A stretch of DNA of 63,323 bases, filler included, from Reticulomyxa filosa (Eukaryota; Protista; Foraminifera): the NCBI GenBank assembly GCA_000512085.1. It is 21 parts of 21 records of this genome, joined end to end, with 100 filler letters (N's around TTAATTAATTAA, not from the genome) between each part and the next. Parts side by side here need not be neighbours in the genome. Positions count along the whole stretch, not along the records: positions 9,320 to 15,593 come from ASPP01024253.1; 20 more parts are not named here. One strand, 5' to 3'. A program made the translations under genes and the position numbers. Of this stretch, positions 5,318-15,693 are shown piece after piece. The first letter of the stretch is position 1; every line of letters begins with the position of its first letter. A model generated the notes under the pieces. That model ran no database searches. It was not told where the DNA came from and was given only the letters and a program-made list of their open reading frames with translations.

Positions 5318-6186
5318 ACACAAATTTGCGTATGATGTGATGACAAATATCCTTGATTTTTTTGTTTTGTTTGTTCTGGTTTTTTTGTTTTTTTTTATTT
5401 GTTTTGTCTTTTGTTTTTTTTTTTTTTTGGTTATAGACTTCTGGTGGAATTCCATTTATTTGTTGTGTGTATCTTTATTTTTTAGATTTTTTATTTTTTA
5501 TTTTTTTTTTTGTTTCTGTTTTTTTTTTTTTTTTGCTTCACCCAATCCTTTGCACATTCAAAAGCTGGGACTATAAAATGTTTGCAAGAATATTAAAAAC
5601 AATGGATTTTTTTTCTCCTCCCCTTTTTTTGAATCTTCATTGATGGTTTTTTTTGCCCTTTTTCGTTTTGTTGATGGTGGCATTTTTTGAAACCAGTAAG
5701 CAAAGGAATTATTGTTAATTTCATTCTTTCTATTTTGCTTGTTATGCGTGTTTTTTAATAACTCTTTCTTGGTTTTTGGGGAGTGCAAGTGTCTTTTGCA
5801 CGTTGGACAATTCGTCCATCTCTTTTGTGATTAGTTACATTGAAGTCGCTTTTGGGTGAATGGAACTGTGATCAAAACGACTTTCTTGCATATTTGAAAA
5901 TAGTACAAACGATGTTCACATGATTTTTACCTTGAAATAGGAAAAAACTATTATTCGTAAGGATCACTGTTCCAAATTTTTTAAAACATAAATAAAAAGG
6001 CAATGCACTTATTTTGAATTTTGGAAAATTTCTACAAATGCAAAAAATATTGCGGTGCTTGCTTTTCTTTTTCTTCAAAGGACCAAAAAATAATTACATG
6101 TGAAGATCACAAACGATATGTTCACAAACTATGTGCACTTTGTTAAAAACAAATGCTTATCAGAACACAAATTAACAAACAAAAAA

Positions 6187-9319: not shown

Positions 9320-9919
9320 ATCTTTCCGTGTTAACTTTTGGTCTAGTGTCACACATCGATTTTCCGCAACCTGGCGAGCCCTTTTTTTTTAATAATTTTT
9401 CACAAAAAAGGGGGTTTGACGTTCCCAGCAACGTCTTTCAAGGTGGAGAAGAGAAAAGTGCGTGGAAAAGTACTTTTCTTACTTTTCGGTGTTTTCCAAT
9501 TGCTCTCGAATCGTTTTATTGTGAATGCTGAGTTGCTCGTTTTCGGCAACTATCTTGTCTTGTAATAATTGGTAGTGTTTCTCCGAATCTTTCGTGCGCT
9601 GTCTAAAATCCACCTCTGTTTCTGCTAACAGCTTTCGCAATCGATCCACTTCACTACGATCCTCTCTTTGGTATCTCATCAACATCTGAAGGCGATGATT
9701 CAAGTTACGCAGTTCTCGCTTCTCATTCATACGCTTTTTTTGTGCTGGAGATGTCAAATCAAATCCCCTTTTTTTTTTTTTAAGGGTTAATTTCCGAGTC
9801 AGTTTTAAGAAGCTGAACAAACAACATTTTACCTACCCTTCGTCTTCTTGCTCATTATCTGGTTCTAGAGGCTGAGAGGCAGCACTGCGATTATTTTCTT
9901 TTGTTGGAGGTTGCGACAT
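9320..9919 (-). CDS. Lamin/intermediate-filament-like protein, N-terminal part (exons 9919-9837, 9767-9483, 9380-9320)
   Basis: Two phase-2 introns (GTAGGT and GTAAGA donors, AAG acceptors) give MSQPPTKEN...GGFDLTSPAQKKRMNEKRELRNLNHRLQMLMRYQREDRSEVDRLRKLLAETEVDFRQRTKDSEKHYQ. This is an SP site followed by the coil-1A signature EKxELxxLNxRL at lamin spacing, then coiled coil. Confidence 0.75.
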
Positions 9920-10119
9920 GATGTGACTTGTTTCTGGCAGTTCAGAGAAAATAGAACTATGGCGGGAAAAAAAAACTTAGCCTTGCAAAAAAGTCAAAAT
10001 TGCTTGGAAAAGTTAAATAATCCGTTTGTTGTACGCCCAGATAAAGATCTTTATAAAAGACAAGTTAAAAGTAGGCTTTTATTGTTGATTTTTGCAGTTT
10101 AAAAAAGAAATAAAAATAT

Positions 10120-10269
10120 AATATCTGAATGTCCTCCTAAATATGCATATTCACCAAAATAAATATTATTCATTGATGAATTTATAAAATTAGATTTATT
10201 TAAACAAGCTTGAACAAAATTAACATTATCTAAATTAGCATTACTAAAATCAGTTCCTTCAAGAAATGC
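10120..10269 (-). pseudogene. Isolated fragment of the pentapeptide-to-first-WD40 junction of the NACHT-WD40 family
   Basis: AFLEGTDFSNANLDNVNFVQACLNKSNFINSSMNNIYFGEYAYLGGHSD is colinear with 8466-8323 of the gene at 6187-9219. There is no continuation on either side. Confidence 0.85.
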
Positions 10270-10853
10270 TGCATCCTCAAACAAAAAAGCAAAACAATAA
10301 CATGTTACAATAAGGTCGGGTGAATTCTTGGGGATAATACAGTTATCAATAAACTTGAATTTAACTTAAATGTTGCAAAGTGTAATTTTTTTAATTTTTT
10401 GCCAAAAACAATTATCATTTTGATTGGTCGTTTGAGAGTGAAATGTCGCAAGAGTTTAAACAAAGAATTTAAAAAACACAAAACTTAGAGAAAAATTTGA
10501 TACGAAATGTTTAAAATTCCGTCTTACAATGTGAAGTTACAAGAGATTCTTAACAAACACAAAAATATTGACTGTTCTGCAAATTTCAATAAGTTAAAGT
10601 AAATTGATTACAAGAGTAAACAAAAAAATAACGAAAAGAGGTTGACTGAAATAATCACCGAGTGACTGTCCATTTTATTAACATTATTTAAGTTCTTTTT
10701 AGTCTTTAGTTAGCAAATAAGTTTTTGATACTTTGCTATTGGAGTTGAAAAATCTATTGTATTTAAATATACTTTATAAAATCGTTTAACTGGCTGTCCT
10801 TGGTATAATGTCGACTGTAAGTTGTTTTCAAGTAGGACCCTTCTAAAAAAAAA

Positions 10854-13143
10854 ATGATGATATTTGCACGAACCCGACTACTTCCAAAAGCATTGACAAA
10901 ATGCTTACCCTCTCAATTTAGCTATCAAACTGTGGGAAAATGGTGTGTATATTCGTCGAGATATTGGCTATCTTACTCGTCCTCTCGTTTGCAGGACCTG
11001 AAAGTCTCGTTGAGCAACAAAGACACAAAAAGGGAGAGACAAGCCCAGAAAAAGCAAGAAAAATCGAAAGCTAAAAAAGTGGACGAAGCATCGCAGTCAG
11101 AGGTTCCAACTCAGTCTTCCAAAACGGTATACACAAACCGATCATTTCATGAGCGTATAAGTACACGAAAGAAGCGTAAGAATCAGCGTCTTCGTGAAAG
11201 GCAGCAACTTGCCGAGCAATACTTTCTGGACACATTGACAAAAAAAAAAATTAGAAATGGGATTAGTTGACGTGACCTATAAAATCGATATCAAGGACTA
11301 TGACATTTCAAGACATATTATTGGTCCCAATGTTTTATACAAAGACAATAATGTGATTGTTTTGCACAAGCTTCCAGGAATCGTCTCTTGTGTCGACAAG
11401 CGTTTTTTACCACAACATGAGACAAGCGAGAAACGCGAACAAGCCATTCTTCCCGATCTTCAATCCATGCTTCGCGAACACATCAAAGTGGACAAAGAGC
11501 TGAGAGAAACCTGGCGTTTTTTGGCCCAACAAGCGATCGACATTGCAGCAACTACAAAAAATTTGCACCGTCAGCCAAGTGTTTCCACAGTCACGCAAGA
11601 TCACAACTCACCCCTTACAAAGATCGATAAATGGATGATTGAAGCCAAAAAATTGAATGAAAAATATGGTATGTATATACATATATGTATATATATATTA
11701 ATAAAAAAAAAATGATATGAATGTTTGTGTTTGTTGCGAAGGAAATAGTGACAAAGTAGAAGAGCAGGAAAAAAAAGATACGAATGTGGATATAGTTCCT
11801 TATGTTGGAGTTTTGCATCGATTGGACCATATGGTGAGTGGCGTGTTACTGTTTACAAGACATGCACAAGCGACCAAAGAGTTTGTGGAACTGTTTTCGC
11901 AAAAAAAAATTCGCAAGTATTACGTGGCCATTGTGAAAGGCATCCCCAACTGGAACGAAAAGTCGCAACAATGCTCGGTTCGACATGGCGTGTTGGAGCA
12001 TTACATCTCCAAATCTGATCATCTCCTTAAAGTCAAGGTTTTGTCCAAAAAGTTTGTTGATGACCTGTTGCACCAGGCTAATCCGTCATCCGTTCAAAAT
12101 GAAAAGTCGTCTTCGGCTGCTTCTGATATGATTCATTCGACAACACATGGTTAGAGCTTTTTTCTTCTTTCGATTGTATATATACTTTTAATCTTCGTCC
12201 TTTAATTTTCTATAAATTGTTTTAGGGCAAAGAATGAGGAGGACTTGATTTGTGAGAGATAAGGAAAATTCAGTGTTGATTATCGAAATTTTGTGTTGAA
12301 GTATATGTAAAGATCATTTTGTTGAGATTCAACCCCTTTTTTTTTTTTTGAATGAATAAATTGGGCTGGGGGGACATTGAACCAATTTCATTGAATTATA
12401 CATGTTGACAATGAATATGAAAATTTTTGGAACTTCTTTGAATATGAATGTCTATGTGTGATGTTTGCACATTATTTTTGTCGTTTATGCAGCGACAGAT
12501 GGCTCACGAACAGTGGTATATTTGGATAAAATGGGGAAATTATCTGGTGTGAAATATGATGTTAGAAATGACGAAGAAGAAGAAGATGACAATGAAACGG
12601 AAAATCAAACGTCAGAAACAAACAAATCCACGAAAATTAGCGCTGCTAGTGTTTTATCAATTTCTCAAAACAATTCAACCGATGGTACCACGAAAAAACA
12701 TTCTTTATGTTTCAAATATGACAAATTGAAATATGAAGTATTGGACACATTTGAGTACTCGGGACAAATTACAGTATATTAAAGATTCAAACTTTCAGTT
12801 GTCGAAAACATCAAATACGTGCTCAATTATCCTATGAAAAGTTTCCAATTGTTGGAGATACTACTTATCGTTGCTCATTGCCATTTTTGGCAAATAAAGA
12901 TTGTGAAAAATTTACTGAATCATTGAATATTAAATCTAAACCGTCTAAAAATCGAAACAGTTCCATTCAAGTAATCCAATGTTCGTTGGTGAATGCGAAA
13001 AATTAATTGCACTTCATGCATGGATACTTGAATATGAATGCCCTTTCACTAAACAGCTACGATGCATTGAGTCGCCTATTCCTTTATATTGGACTGCCAG
13101 ATTTGGTTTACCTGTTATTCATAAAATATTTGACCACTTTTGA
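10854..13143 (+). CDS. RluA/RluD-family pseudouridine synthase with a possible organellar presequence; several frameshifts
   Basis: Motifs VLHKLPG, GVLHRLDHMVSGVLLF (catalytic Asp) and KYYVAIVKG. Outside the ORF track: RKHQIRAQLS, PIVGDTTY and IALHAWIL, ending TGA at 13141-13143. Intron 11669-11741. Frameshifts near 11245, 12768 and 12965; exon structure 12150-12490 unresolved. Confidence 0.85.
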
Positions 13144-13503
13144 TTATCAATATTTTAAATTCAATTGAAACTGTTTGTTAGTACTTTATTTCATGAGACA
13201 TTGTGGTCTAAAATCGAACTACAATTTTACCAATATAATTAATAAAAAATAAGTGTACGCATCAAAATAGATCTTTATGAATAAGTCTAATTTTTTAATT
13301 AAACATTATATTTTTTCTTAAGCAGTCTATCAAATTAACTGTATTTTGTTCGAGCATTAAGAAAAATATTACAAAACTATTTGACAACAGAAATAAAATT
13401 AGAAGAAATAAGTTGTTAATTTAAAGAAATAAAATGATATAAAAAAAGTTCATTTTTTGAAACGAGCACTGGAAACAAAGAAATGTAAATAATTCCGTTT
13501 TTT

Positions 13504-15370
13504 TCAATTGATATAAGTGATTAAATACATTGGATAGCATTGTCCTAAGTCAAATGTAACAAAAATAGTGGGACACTCCAGATCATTTACACATGAGTCG
13601 TACAAATCGTGACAGCCTAATTTAATGGGCTCTGGTCTAACCAAATCTCGATGTCCAAGATGATAATTACCAACTTTGACCCGGCACAAGAGCATTTGAC
13701 GTGTTCGATCAATATCGGATTCATGACAAAACCGATTACTGTAAGAAGAATGAACAGCAAAATAGGAGCCTTTTCCATAAGCAGTGTCATTGGTACCAGA
13801 TAATCTTGGATCAATACCTTGCTGGACAATAGCAGCAACACATCCTGGTGATGTACCATGAAATAGATAATGTTCCCTTATGGCAGCAGGATTTGTCCTG
13901 ATGCTATTCATGCCTTTCCAATCTTTGAAAGAATTAAATAGCCTACTGTTTTCTATCCGCTCTATTTTCATAATTGTGGCACAAGGCATTCCACGATCTT
14001 TGAATAGCTGCCAAGCCCATTTATATTCTTGAGCAGAAGCAGTGCCTAGAGCAACTTCTTCCAAAGTTGCAAGTCTATTTATATTAAGACTGGTACAGTA
14101 GCACACACATACACACATTAGTCCTTTTTTGCTTTCTCGATTATTGCACAACATGCACATACGTACACATAGTACGTATACTTACTCATTTTTACTTCTC
14201 CAAACGTTTTTCCATCTTTCAAATGGAATAGTAGGTATTCCACAAAATATCCTTCGTCGAACATGTTTTTGCCTTCCACTGGAATGTGACTGTTGTACCA
14301 TGGGTTCATGACACACATATAAAGTCATGTGATATCCATCACGAATCACATAATCAATGGCAGAGGACTTCAGTTGATAGCGACACTCCACATACGATGC
14401 CACTTCCGGGTCAAATGAGATCCAGCAATGGCGATCATCCAAATATTGCCATTCAAAATTTTCCGGTATTTTCAACCCAGTAATGCACATGCTTGTTGCT
14501 TGGAACACCCGACCTGTGTAATGCTGCAAGATTTTCGGAGCAATACTCTCTTGTGCAAGCCATGCTCGATACGTAATCTGCAAGGAATACAATTCATGAT
14601 ACGCTTCAGGATTTGTATGTCCCCGAACTTGATCCATTTTTTGCTGTATCTTTTCAAGCATTGTCTTTATACTTTGCGGAGGACTATTTTCATTCAGCGT
14701 CGCAAATTGCCGAGCTATCCAAGTGTGATATTGATTCTTCAAACATCCGCCATTATCTTCACCGTCACGTACAGTCTGAGTGCTGTTCGGACTATTCGGG
14801 TACAAGGCACTATTTTTTCTTTTCCTATTTCGATTTGAAAAGTATTTACCATCTTGAAGACGGCCAAAGCGGGAATGTATGAATTTGATTTTTTTGCCTA
14901 CGCAAACAACGTATACATACATCAACGTTGCTTCTACGTATATAGTTAATACGTTTATGTATATCCTCCAATATATTTTCTTTTGCAATCTCTCCCTTCT
15001 TTTTTTCCCTCTCTCCTTCACCTCCGATAACAACAACAATAACAAAGGAAACAAAACTGCATTTCGAATGGAAGGAGGTCCTGTAGAGGCCTGAAATGGC
15101 GGCCATTGATCGTTGTTGAGAAATGATTTGTGCACGACTGCGACGTCCAACAGCGGTCCATTGATTTTGCATCTGTCGAAAGCTATGCGAAGGGACCTTT
15201 CTCGCTACACTTTGTGTGTGACTGGAATGGATGCCACTGAATATTGTCTTGTTCAAACTATCGACCATCGGCTTAACATAACGGTGGTGACCAAGTCCAT
15301 TGCGATGGAAACTGATACCAATTTGGCTAAAGTTGGCTGGTCGCAAACGTCGATATCTCGTCTTTTTGTC
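13504..15370 (-). CDS. WWE-domain PARP (ADP-ribosyltransferase), PARP11/12/TIPARP-like, spliced, 5' partial
   Basis: WWE: FEWQYLDDRHCWISFD...VECRYQ...MVQQSHSSGRQKHVRR. Intron 14185-14075 (GTAAGT..TAG). Catalytic domain LFHGTS, YGKGSYFA, PTIFVTFD, CYPMYLITY. Confidence 0.9.
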
Positions 15371-15693
15371 CTATATGTAATTCTCTTTTGAATCTTGTAT
15401 TATATGCATCATATATGTACATATGTGCATAGTTTTTTTTTAAGAAAAAAAAAAAGAAATAGCAACCTTAATAAATATTTCATCATTGCTTAAAGTAATT
15501 TGTTTTCCAAGTGCTGTTTTTATACATACATTCATTCACTTTATTCGATGTTGTTTCCTCTCTCCTCCCCCCCAAAAAAAAGAATATGCATATNNNNNNN
15601 NNNNNNNNNNNNNNNNNNNNNNNNNNNNNNNNNNNNNTTAATTAATTAANNNNNNNNNNNNNNNNNNNNNNNNNNNNNNNNNNNNNNNNNNNN

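Follow-up and report, generated by a model that had tools for sequence, protein, structure and literature searches.

A rhizarian lamin was reported in 2015 (Kollmar 2015, PMC4448529), and a comparative survey listed ETO28743, ETO24379 and ETO27405 together with four further fragments of the foraminifer Reticulomyxa filosa as lamins (Koreny & Field 2016, PMC5630835, Table S1). The same table holds full-length lamins of the foraminifera Ammonia and Elphidium, taken from MMETSP transcripts, which have both a lamin tail domain (LTD) and a CaaX box (CLMM, CFVM, CFIM) and contain the sequence LD.EIELYR.ILN.AE. We found no literature on the localisation of foraminiferal lamins. An experimentally characterised model for such a protein is NE81 of Dictyostelium, a non-metazoan lamin that is described as having a rod, an NLS and a CaaX box as well as a head with a CDK1 site (PMC6406624, PMC7464662). 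Its gene is described as single-copy, in contrast to the several lamin copies of R. filosa.

The window analysed here is a stretch of 63,323 nucleotides, filler included, joined from parts of the R. filosa genome. Reverse-complemented, window positions 9320..15593 are identical to the whole of contig ASPP01024253.1 (6,274 bp, GCA_000512085.1). We find that positions 9919..9320 on the minus strand very probably represent the 5′ part of an R. filosa lamin-family gene, the remainder of which would be as in the rest of the family. An earlier note on this DNA had considered a lamin potentially novel for the taxon; with a rhizarian lamin described in 2015 (PMC4448529) and seven R. filosa fragments in 2016 (PMC5630835), this novelty does not hold. 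Lamins of Rhizaria, foraminifera among them, were known from these two studies (Kollmar 2015; Koreny & Field 2016), and the window copy therefore leaves our view of lamin evolution unchanged. The value of the present locus lies mainly in annotation, as the lamin family of R. filosa appears larger than published. None of the three N-terminal fragments in Table S1 (PMC5630835) begins with the MSQPPTK... found here, and the window copy is therefore a further paralogue; ETO09545 is not in this table either. Judged by sequence, R. filosa hence has at least five distinct lamin N-termini, including the window copy and ETO09545.

Gene structure at the contig end

Direct reading of the minus strand from 9919 to 9320 gave the start of a lamin-like gene with an ATG, three exons and two short in-frame introns. 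In one frame, this piece contains a first open stretch, MSQPPTKENNRSAASQPLEPDNEQEDEG, that ends in a stop, a second one, ...GFDLTSPAQKKRMNEKRELRNLNHRLQMLMRYQREDRSEVDRLRKLLAETEVDFRQRTKDSEKHYQLLQDKIVAENEQLSIHNKTIREQLENTEK, that also ends in a stop, and a third one, ...ARQVAENRCVTLDQKLTRKD, that reaches the edge of the piece; the stops between them fall within the two introns. Exon 1 (9837..9919, minus strand) begins with the ATG at 9919 and encodes MSQPPTKENNRSAASQPLEPDNEQEDE, followed by GG as the first two bases of a Gly codon. It is separated by intron 1 (9768..9836, minus strand; 69 nt, GTAGGT donor, A-run before AG, phase 2, with an in-frame TAG) from exon 2 (9483..9767, minus strand), which reads G-GFDLTSPAQKKRMNEKRELRNLNHRL...REQLENTE and ends with AA. 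Exon 2 runs from the head end GFDLTSPAQKKRMN through coil 1A (EKRELRNLNHRLQMLMRYQRE...AETE) and a linker-like stretch into the first part of coil 1B. Intron 2 (9381..9482, minus strand; 102 nt, GTAAGA donor, A-run before AG, phase 2) leads to a partial exon 3 (9320..9380, minus strand), (K)ARQVAENRCVTLDQKLTRKD. Both introns have canonical GT-AG ends and lengths divisible by three. As contig ASPP01024253.1 genuinely ends in exon 3, the gene breaks off after about 143 codons, which extend from the head through coil 1A and the linker region into the beginning of coil 1B.

The encoded protein has a head of about 40 residues that ends with TSPAQKKR and is followed by MNEKRELRNLNHRL. Directly after this head, the protein carries the coil 1A start motif EK..L..LN.R(L/F), at 9689..9724 on the minus strand, with the sequence EKRELRNLNHRL. 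Both peptides quoted in the earlier note were located on the minus strand where it had placed them. The fragment is unannotated by NCBI: on contig ASPP01024253.1 three genes are annotated, none of them over the lamin-like fragment, and a word-index search of the protein collection with exon 2 found no product among candidates of 52-165 aa.

Relationship to foraminiferal and metazoan lamins

We searched exon 2 exhaustively with phmmer against 1.84 billion representative proteins. At E<=1e-3 only ten proteins were found, and they form one family once a repeat artefact is removed, namely the tandem-repeat protein P0007, which we set aside as spurious. The best match was ETO28743 (568 aa; E=1.2e-28, 74% identity), followed by ETO24379 (E=8e-25, 64% identity) and ETO27405 (E=2e-21, 57% identity), and also ETO09545 matched with 49% identity; all four are from R. 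filosa. The remaining matches were shorter fragments, one of them from the foraminifer Bolivina argentea. A word-index search with the ETO28743 protein returned only ETO28743 itself and ETO24379. The four R. filosa proteins come from the same genome as the window copy and align with it from the head end through coil 1A into the first part of coil 1B, whereas the window copy is a distinct locus that is not gene-called and stands outside the published table.

The relationship extends to gene structure, for which we compared the loci of ETO28743 (L001, contig ASPP01006493.1) and ETO27405 (L002, contig ASPP01007277.1). With tblastn, exon 2 matched L001 3354-3626 (E=7e-42), and exon 3 matched both L001 3695-3751 (ARQNAESRCVNLDQAMTRK; 74% identity, E=7e-7) and L002 1168-1224 (E=2e-5). 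Intron 1 interrupts L001, L002 and the window gene in the same phase and at positions that agree to within one codon, and intron 2 likewise agrees among the three in position and phase, splitting a Lys codon as AA/N. All three first exons begin with MS(Q/A)P, and those of L001 (3193-3239, MSAPQSPSAV...) and L002 (630-697, MSQPSNTEST...) also end GG/GT inside a Gly codon. In both of these loci, the second exon ends AA/GT after ...TEK and the third begins with ARQNAESRC.NLDQ, the window counterpart of which is ARQVAENRCVTLDQ.

Between the window gene and L001 or L002, nonsynonymous divergence amounts to 0.19-0.23 per site, and synonymous divergence to 0.76-0.83 per site, a range in which it is saturated. 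From this low nonsynonymous divergence at saturated synonymous sites it follows that the coding sequence is under purifying selection. The three copies are old paralogues maintained by such selection, not alleles or fresh pseudogenes. An allelic relationship to ETO28743 was rejected, since the two agree at only 70% of nucleotides in exon 2 and synonymous divergence has reached saturation.

The introns of the window gene show a further peculiarity. Both end with 10-14 A directly before the AG and have no pyrimidine tract (minus strand, 9768-9790 and 9381-9400), and this A-run was not seen in the homologous introns of L001 and L002.

In contrast to this close match within R. filosa, similarity to human lamin A emerged from single sequences only faintly. 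The window exons were searched one by one. Scanned in this manner against Pfam, they matched neither Filament nor LTD and gave noise only (YabA, zinc knuckle); for exon 2, a match to Pfam Filament was absent even at E<=10. In a single-sequence phmmer search of PDB, exon 2 reached coil 1A of human lamin A with E=0.47 only, beside unrelated bacterial TetR and MerR regulators, and an Atlas language-model search yielded mixed coiled-coil families and was uninformative. On its own, the window fragment hence reads as a generic coiled coil. Unlike metazoan lamins, the window copy, represented here by its N-terminal part, lies below the Pfam Filament threshold.

A different result was obtained with profile A1, an alignment of ten foraminiferal N-termini that was searched against all PDB sequences. 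Its top four matches were human prelamin A/C coil 1A chains (E=2.9e-4 to 2e-3), with keratin 1 and lamin A 1-300 ranking close behind. In the register of this profile, the Pro of the window head falls on lamin A Pro23, and EKRELRNLNHRL falls on the start of the lamin A rod. A1 shows three invariant residues in this motif (L22, R25, L26) and three nearly invariant ones (K16, R20, N23); Bolivina and other foraminiferal sequences belong to the same family with 29-38% identity in A1. As judged from these searches, the pairwise similarity between window copy and lamin A is not above chance by itself and becomes significant only through the foraminiferal family. With A2, a profile of the whole rod, lamin A coil 1A scored E=0.005 in PDB and was intermixed with influenza HA2 stalks, so that this profile was not discriminating, probably because the NCBI models used for it hold read-through introns.

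In the alignment from the A1 search, the window protein and lamin A run without gaps over 45 residues, from the Pro of the S-P to ...AETE, with 15/45 identities counted by hand. Past coil 1A, lamin A 1-300 is matched with gaps only, profile positions 7-91 being set against chain positions 27-118. The earlier note had proposed a gapless alignment over about 60 residues; this is real for 45 residues of coil 1A, and the figure of 60 is somewhat overstated because the match needs gaps beyond that point. The human lamin A string that the note gave agrees with the prelamin A/C PDB chains as far as ...RITESEEVV.

Metazoan lamins, i.e., human lamin A/C and B-type lamins, likewise carry the coil 1A start motif EK..L..LN.RL after a short head. 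They differ in the Y-I-x-K/R-V-R part of the motif, for which the window copy has MLMRYQRE. Closer at hand, the lamins of Ammonia sp. and Elphidium margaritaceum share with the window copy the N-terminal pattern (Q)KR.(V/L)R.LN.RL.M.VR...E...L..(Q/T)E(M/V)(D/E); these are full-length proteins with LTD and CaaX box.

Lamin hallmarks of the closest paralogue and alternative readings

Downstream features of a lamin can be followed at L001, the locus of the closest paralogue. Its rod ends with AKIQLDNEIA, an intron and YRTILNEAEKEAGY, which together constitute a coil-2 end motif of the LD.EI..YR.LLE type, the second part of which reads YRTILNEAE. After the rod end follows GRKKRN, a basic, NLS-like sequence. 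Two tail exons come next, the first (5405-5573) with APGEPFPLQFSTMDLCSSTLEVQNISDHSIDLRGFYLTN... and the second (5686-5888) with ...ERIKIIVG...LWWHENVWSG..ARLFDPSHKEIARIEISPDM...RKNCLIM and a stop, so that the C-terminal NCLIM forms the CaaX box CLIM. Searched individually, tail exon 1 matched Pfam LTD (PF00932) weakly (E=0.04-0.06), tail exon 2 had no Pfam or PDB match, and a PDB phmmer search with each tail exon gave no match to a lamin tail. In the Atlas language-model search (recognition 2543), all 30 of 30 neighbours of tail exon 2 were LTD clusters, at 0.90-0.91. The sequence support for a tail domain in L001 is thus modest, and it agrees with the LTD-based identification by Koreny & Field 2016 (PMC5630835).

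We assign the fragment to the foraminiferal lamin family because of its homology to the lamins of Table S1, the shared introns and the hallmarks of L001. The lamin identity proposed in the earlier note is upheld by the match to ETO28743 (E=1e-28), the conserved intron positions and a paralogue locus with coil-2 end, NLS-like sequence, tail exons and CaaX box. As suggested by the family, the remainder of the protein would be encoded on a different contig and would comprise the remaining rod with its coil-2 end motif, a basic NLS, an Ig-like LTD and a CaaX box. By established lamin biology and the architecture of the paralogue, it would form parallel coiled-coil dimers, and these would assemble head-to-tail via the start of coil 1A and the end of coil 2, both of which are conserved. 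A basic NLS would direct nuclear import, and a farnesylated CaaX box would anchor the lamina under the inner nuclear membrane.

Alternatively, the window copy could be a lamin-derived paralogue that no longer serves as a nuclear lamin, either as a truncated or decaying duplicate or as a cytoplasmic IF-like derivative without NLS, LTD and CaaX box. The C-terminal two thirds of the gene, in which these elements would reside, lie off the contig, and the fragment has neither an NCBI gene call nor a matching product of 52-165 aa in the protein collection. Degenerate lamin duplicates occur in other lineages (Koreny & Field 2016, PMC5630835); for example, the second ichthyosporean copy has lost NLS, LTD and CaaX box (Koreny & Field 2016, PMC5630835). 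R. filosa has at least five N-terminal copies, in a genome that is highly duplicated and fragmented. Decay is however at odds with three of three exons being open, with both introns keeping GT-AG ends at conserved positions and with pN far below pS against two paralogues, and rhizarian lamin duplicates were described to "have remained fairly similar" (Koreny & Field 2016, PMC5630835). We hence regard a paralogue that has left the lamin function as improbable.

A generic coiled-coil or SMC-like protein that resembles lamin coil 1A by chance is far less probable still and already largely refuted: Pfam Filament is matched by neither exon 2 nor ETO28743, the pairwise E-value to lamin A is only 0.47, Atlas neighbours are assorted coiled-coil families, the whole-rod profile does not discriminate and NCBI names the closest paralogue "condensin, SMC5-subunit", but neither ETO28743 nor ETO24379 contains Pfam SMC domains, ETO28743 has no Pfam domain above threshold at all, at L001 an IF coil-2 end motif is followed by LTD-like exons and a terminal CaaX box, profile A1 matches lamin A coil 1A first and in register, and the full-length Ammonia and Elphidium relatives show the complete lamin architecture (PMC5630835, Table S1).

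With the window copy taken, in our preferred reading, as the 5′ part of a lamin-family gene, R. filosa lamins are missed or misnamed in public data, the window copy being uncalled and ETO28743 named a condensin. ETO28743 is moreover modelled without its likely real first exon, its tail domain and its CaaX box, and the 568-aa product matches neither Filament nor LTD in Pfam.

Several observations concern the public gene models of the paralogues. The model of ETO28743, under its NCBI name "condensin, SMC5-subunit", appears mis-built. The likely real first exon at L001 3193-3239, MSAPQSPSAVNHDEG, which ends GG/GTAA, is outside the NCBI model; several L001 introns are read through as protein in it, and the tail exons (5405-5573, 5686-5888) lie past the annotated stop at 5341. 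At L002, an upstream ATG exon (630-697), MSQPSNTESTTSTKLAEKEKNSG, ends GG/GT and resembles exon 1 of the window gene. The annotated ETO27405 lacks this exon and starts at L002 752, inside an apparent intron. ETO09545 corresponds to a lamin-like N-terminal fragment near a contig end (L004 2182-2532, contig ASPP01024011.1).

Candidate CDK site in the head, and neighbouring genes

The head of the window protein contains a Ser-Pro at 9746..9751 on the minus strand (codons TCT CCA), located 17 residues before the Asn of "LN", which makes it a candidate minimal CDK1-type site. By the A1 search alignment and lamin A numbering, Ser22 of human lamin A has the same spacing. The full CDK consensus is S/T-P-x-K/R. 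The Ser-Pro of the window copy aligns with lamin A Ser22-Pro23, and with the sequence S-P-A-Q-K-K-R it corresponds to the minimal consensus only; the human lamin A head site, in contrast, reads S-P-T-R.

In the A1 alignment, the column of the Ser-Pro is occupied by T-S-D in ETO24379, D-P in ETO27405, S-S in ETO28743 and R-P in Bolivina. None of the four other R. filosa N-termini has a Ser-Pro at the position of lamin A Ser22, nor does Bolivina, and the Ammonia and Elphidium lamins, unlike the window copy, also have no Ser-Pro before coil 1A. Given its absence at this column in the other copies, the site is not conserved within foraminifera. The earlier note had inferred a conserved CDK site; the Ser-Pro does sit at the Ser22 position, but as S-P-A-Q and without a counterpart in four R. 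filosa paralogues and Bolivina, so that conservation cannot be upheld. In plasmodiophorid lamins (Plasmodiophora, Spongospora) the sequence is E-S-P-I-R, and the spacing is again 17 residues (Koreny & Field 2016 Table S1, PMC5630835). The position may thus be ancestral and retained only in the window copy, or it may be a coincidence in a short head rich in S, P and Q.

A regulatory role of this Ser-Pro as a candidate CDK site is possible but unproven. Through it, assembly of the window copy may be sensitive to CDK-type phosphorylation, the weakest step of the scheme outlined above. If the site were functional, we might speculate that foraminiferal paralogues subfunctionalised, with one lamin that is regulated by CDK and able to disassemble and several that are constitutive, a division that we consider unlikely. 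Were it true, it would operate in a giant syncytium, where many nuclei are transported along microtubules. The presence of the Ser-Pro in the window copy only is a small new point and a natural start for work on CDK regulation of a foraminiferal lamin.

Contig ASPP01024253.1 contains further coding sequences. Just upstream of the lamin fragment and on the same strand, a 61-aa ORF (window 10099-10284, minus strand) matches Pfam Pentapeptide repeats (E=3.6e-7); it is not among the NCBI gene calls on the contig. An RluA-type pseudouridine synthase gene (window 10854-13143, plus strand; PF00849, E=1e-14) appears in the NCBI annotation as two separate models, one of 381 aa and one of 142 aa. Its conserved ...RKHQIRAQL...PIVGDTTY motif (12779-12870) lies in another frame than the preceding ORF, which ends at 12782; this frame change points to a tiny intron, to a frameshift or to an error of the assembly. 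Window 13504-15346 (minus strand) holds RFI_28186, annotated as a hypothetical protein, of 544 aa and with a WWE and a PARP catalytic domain.
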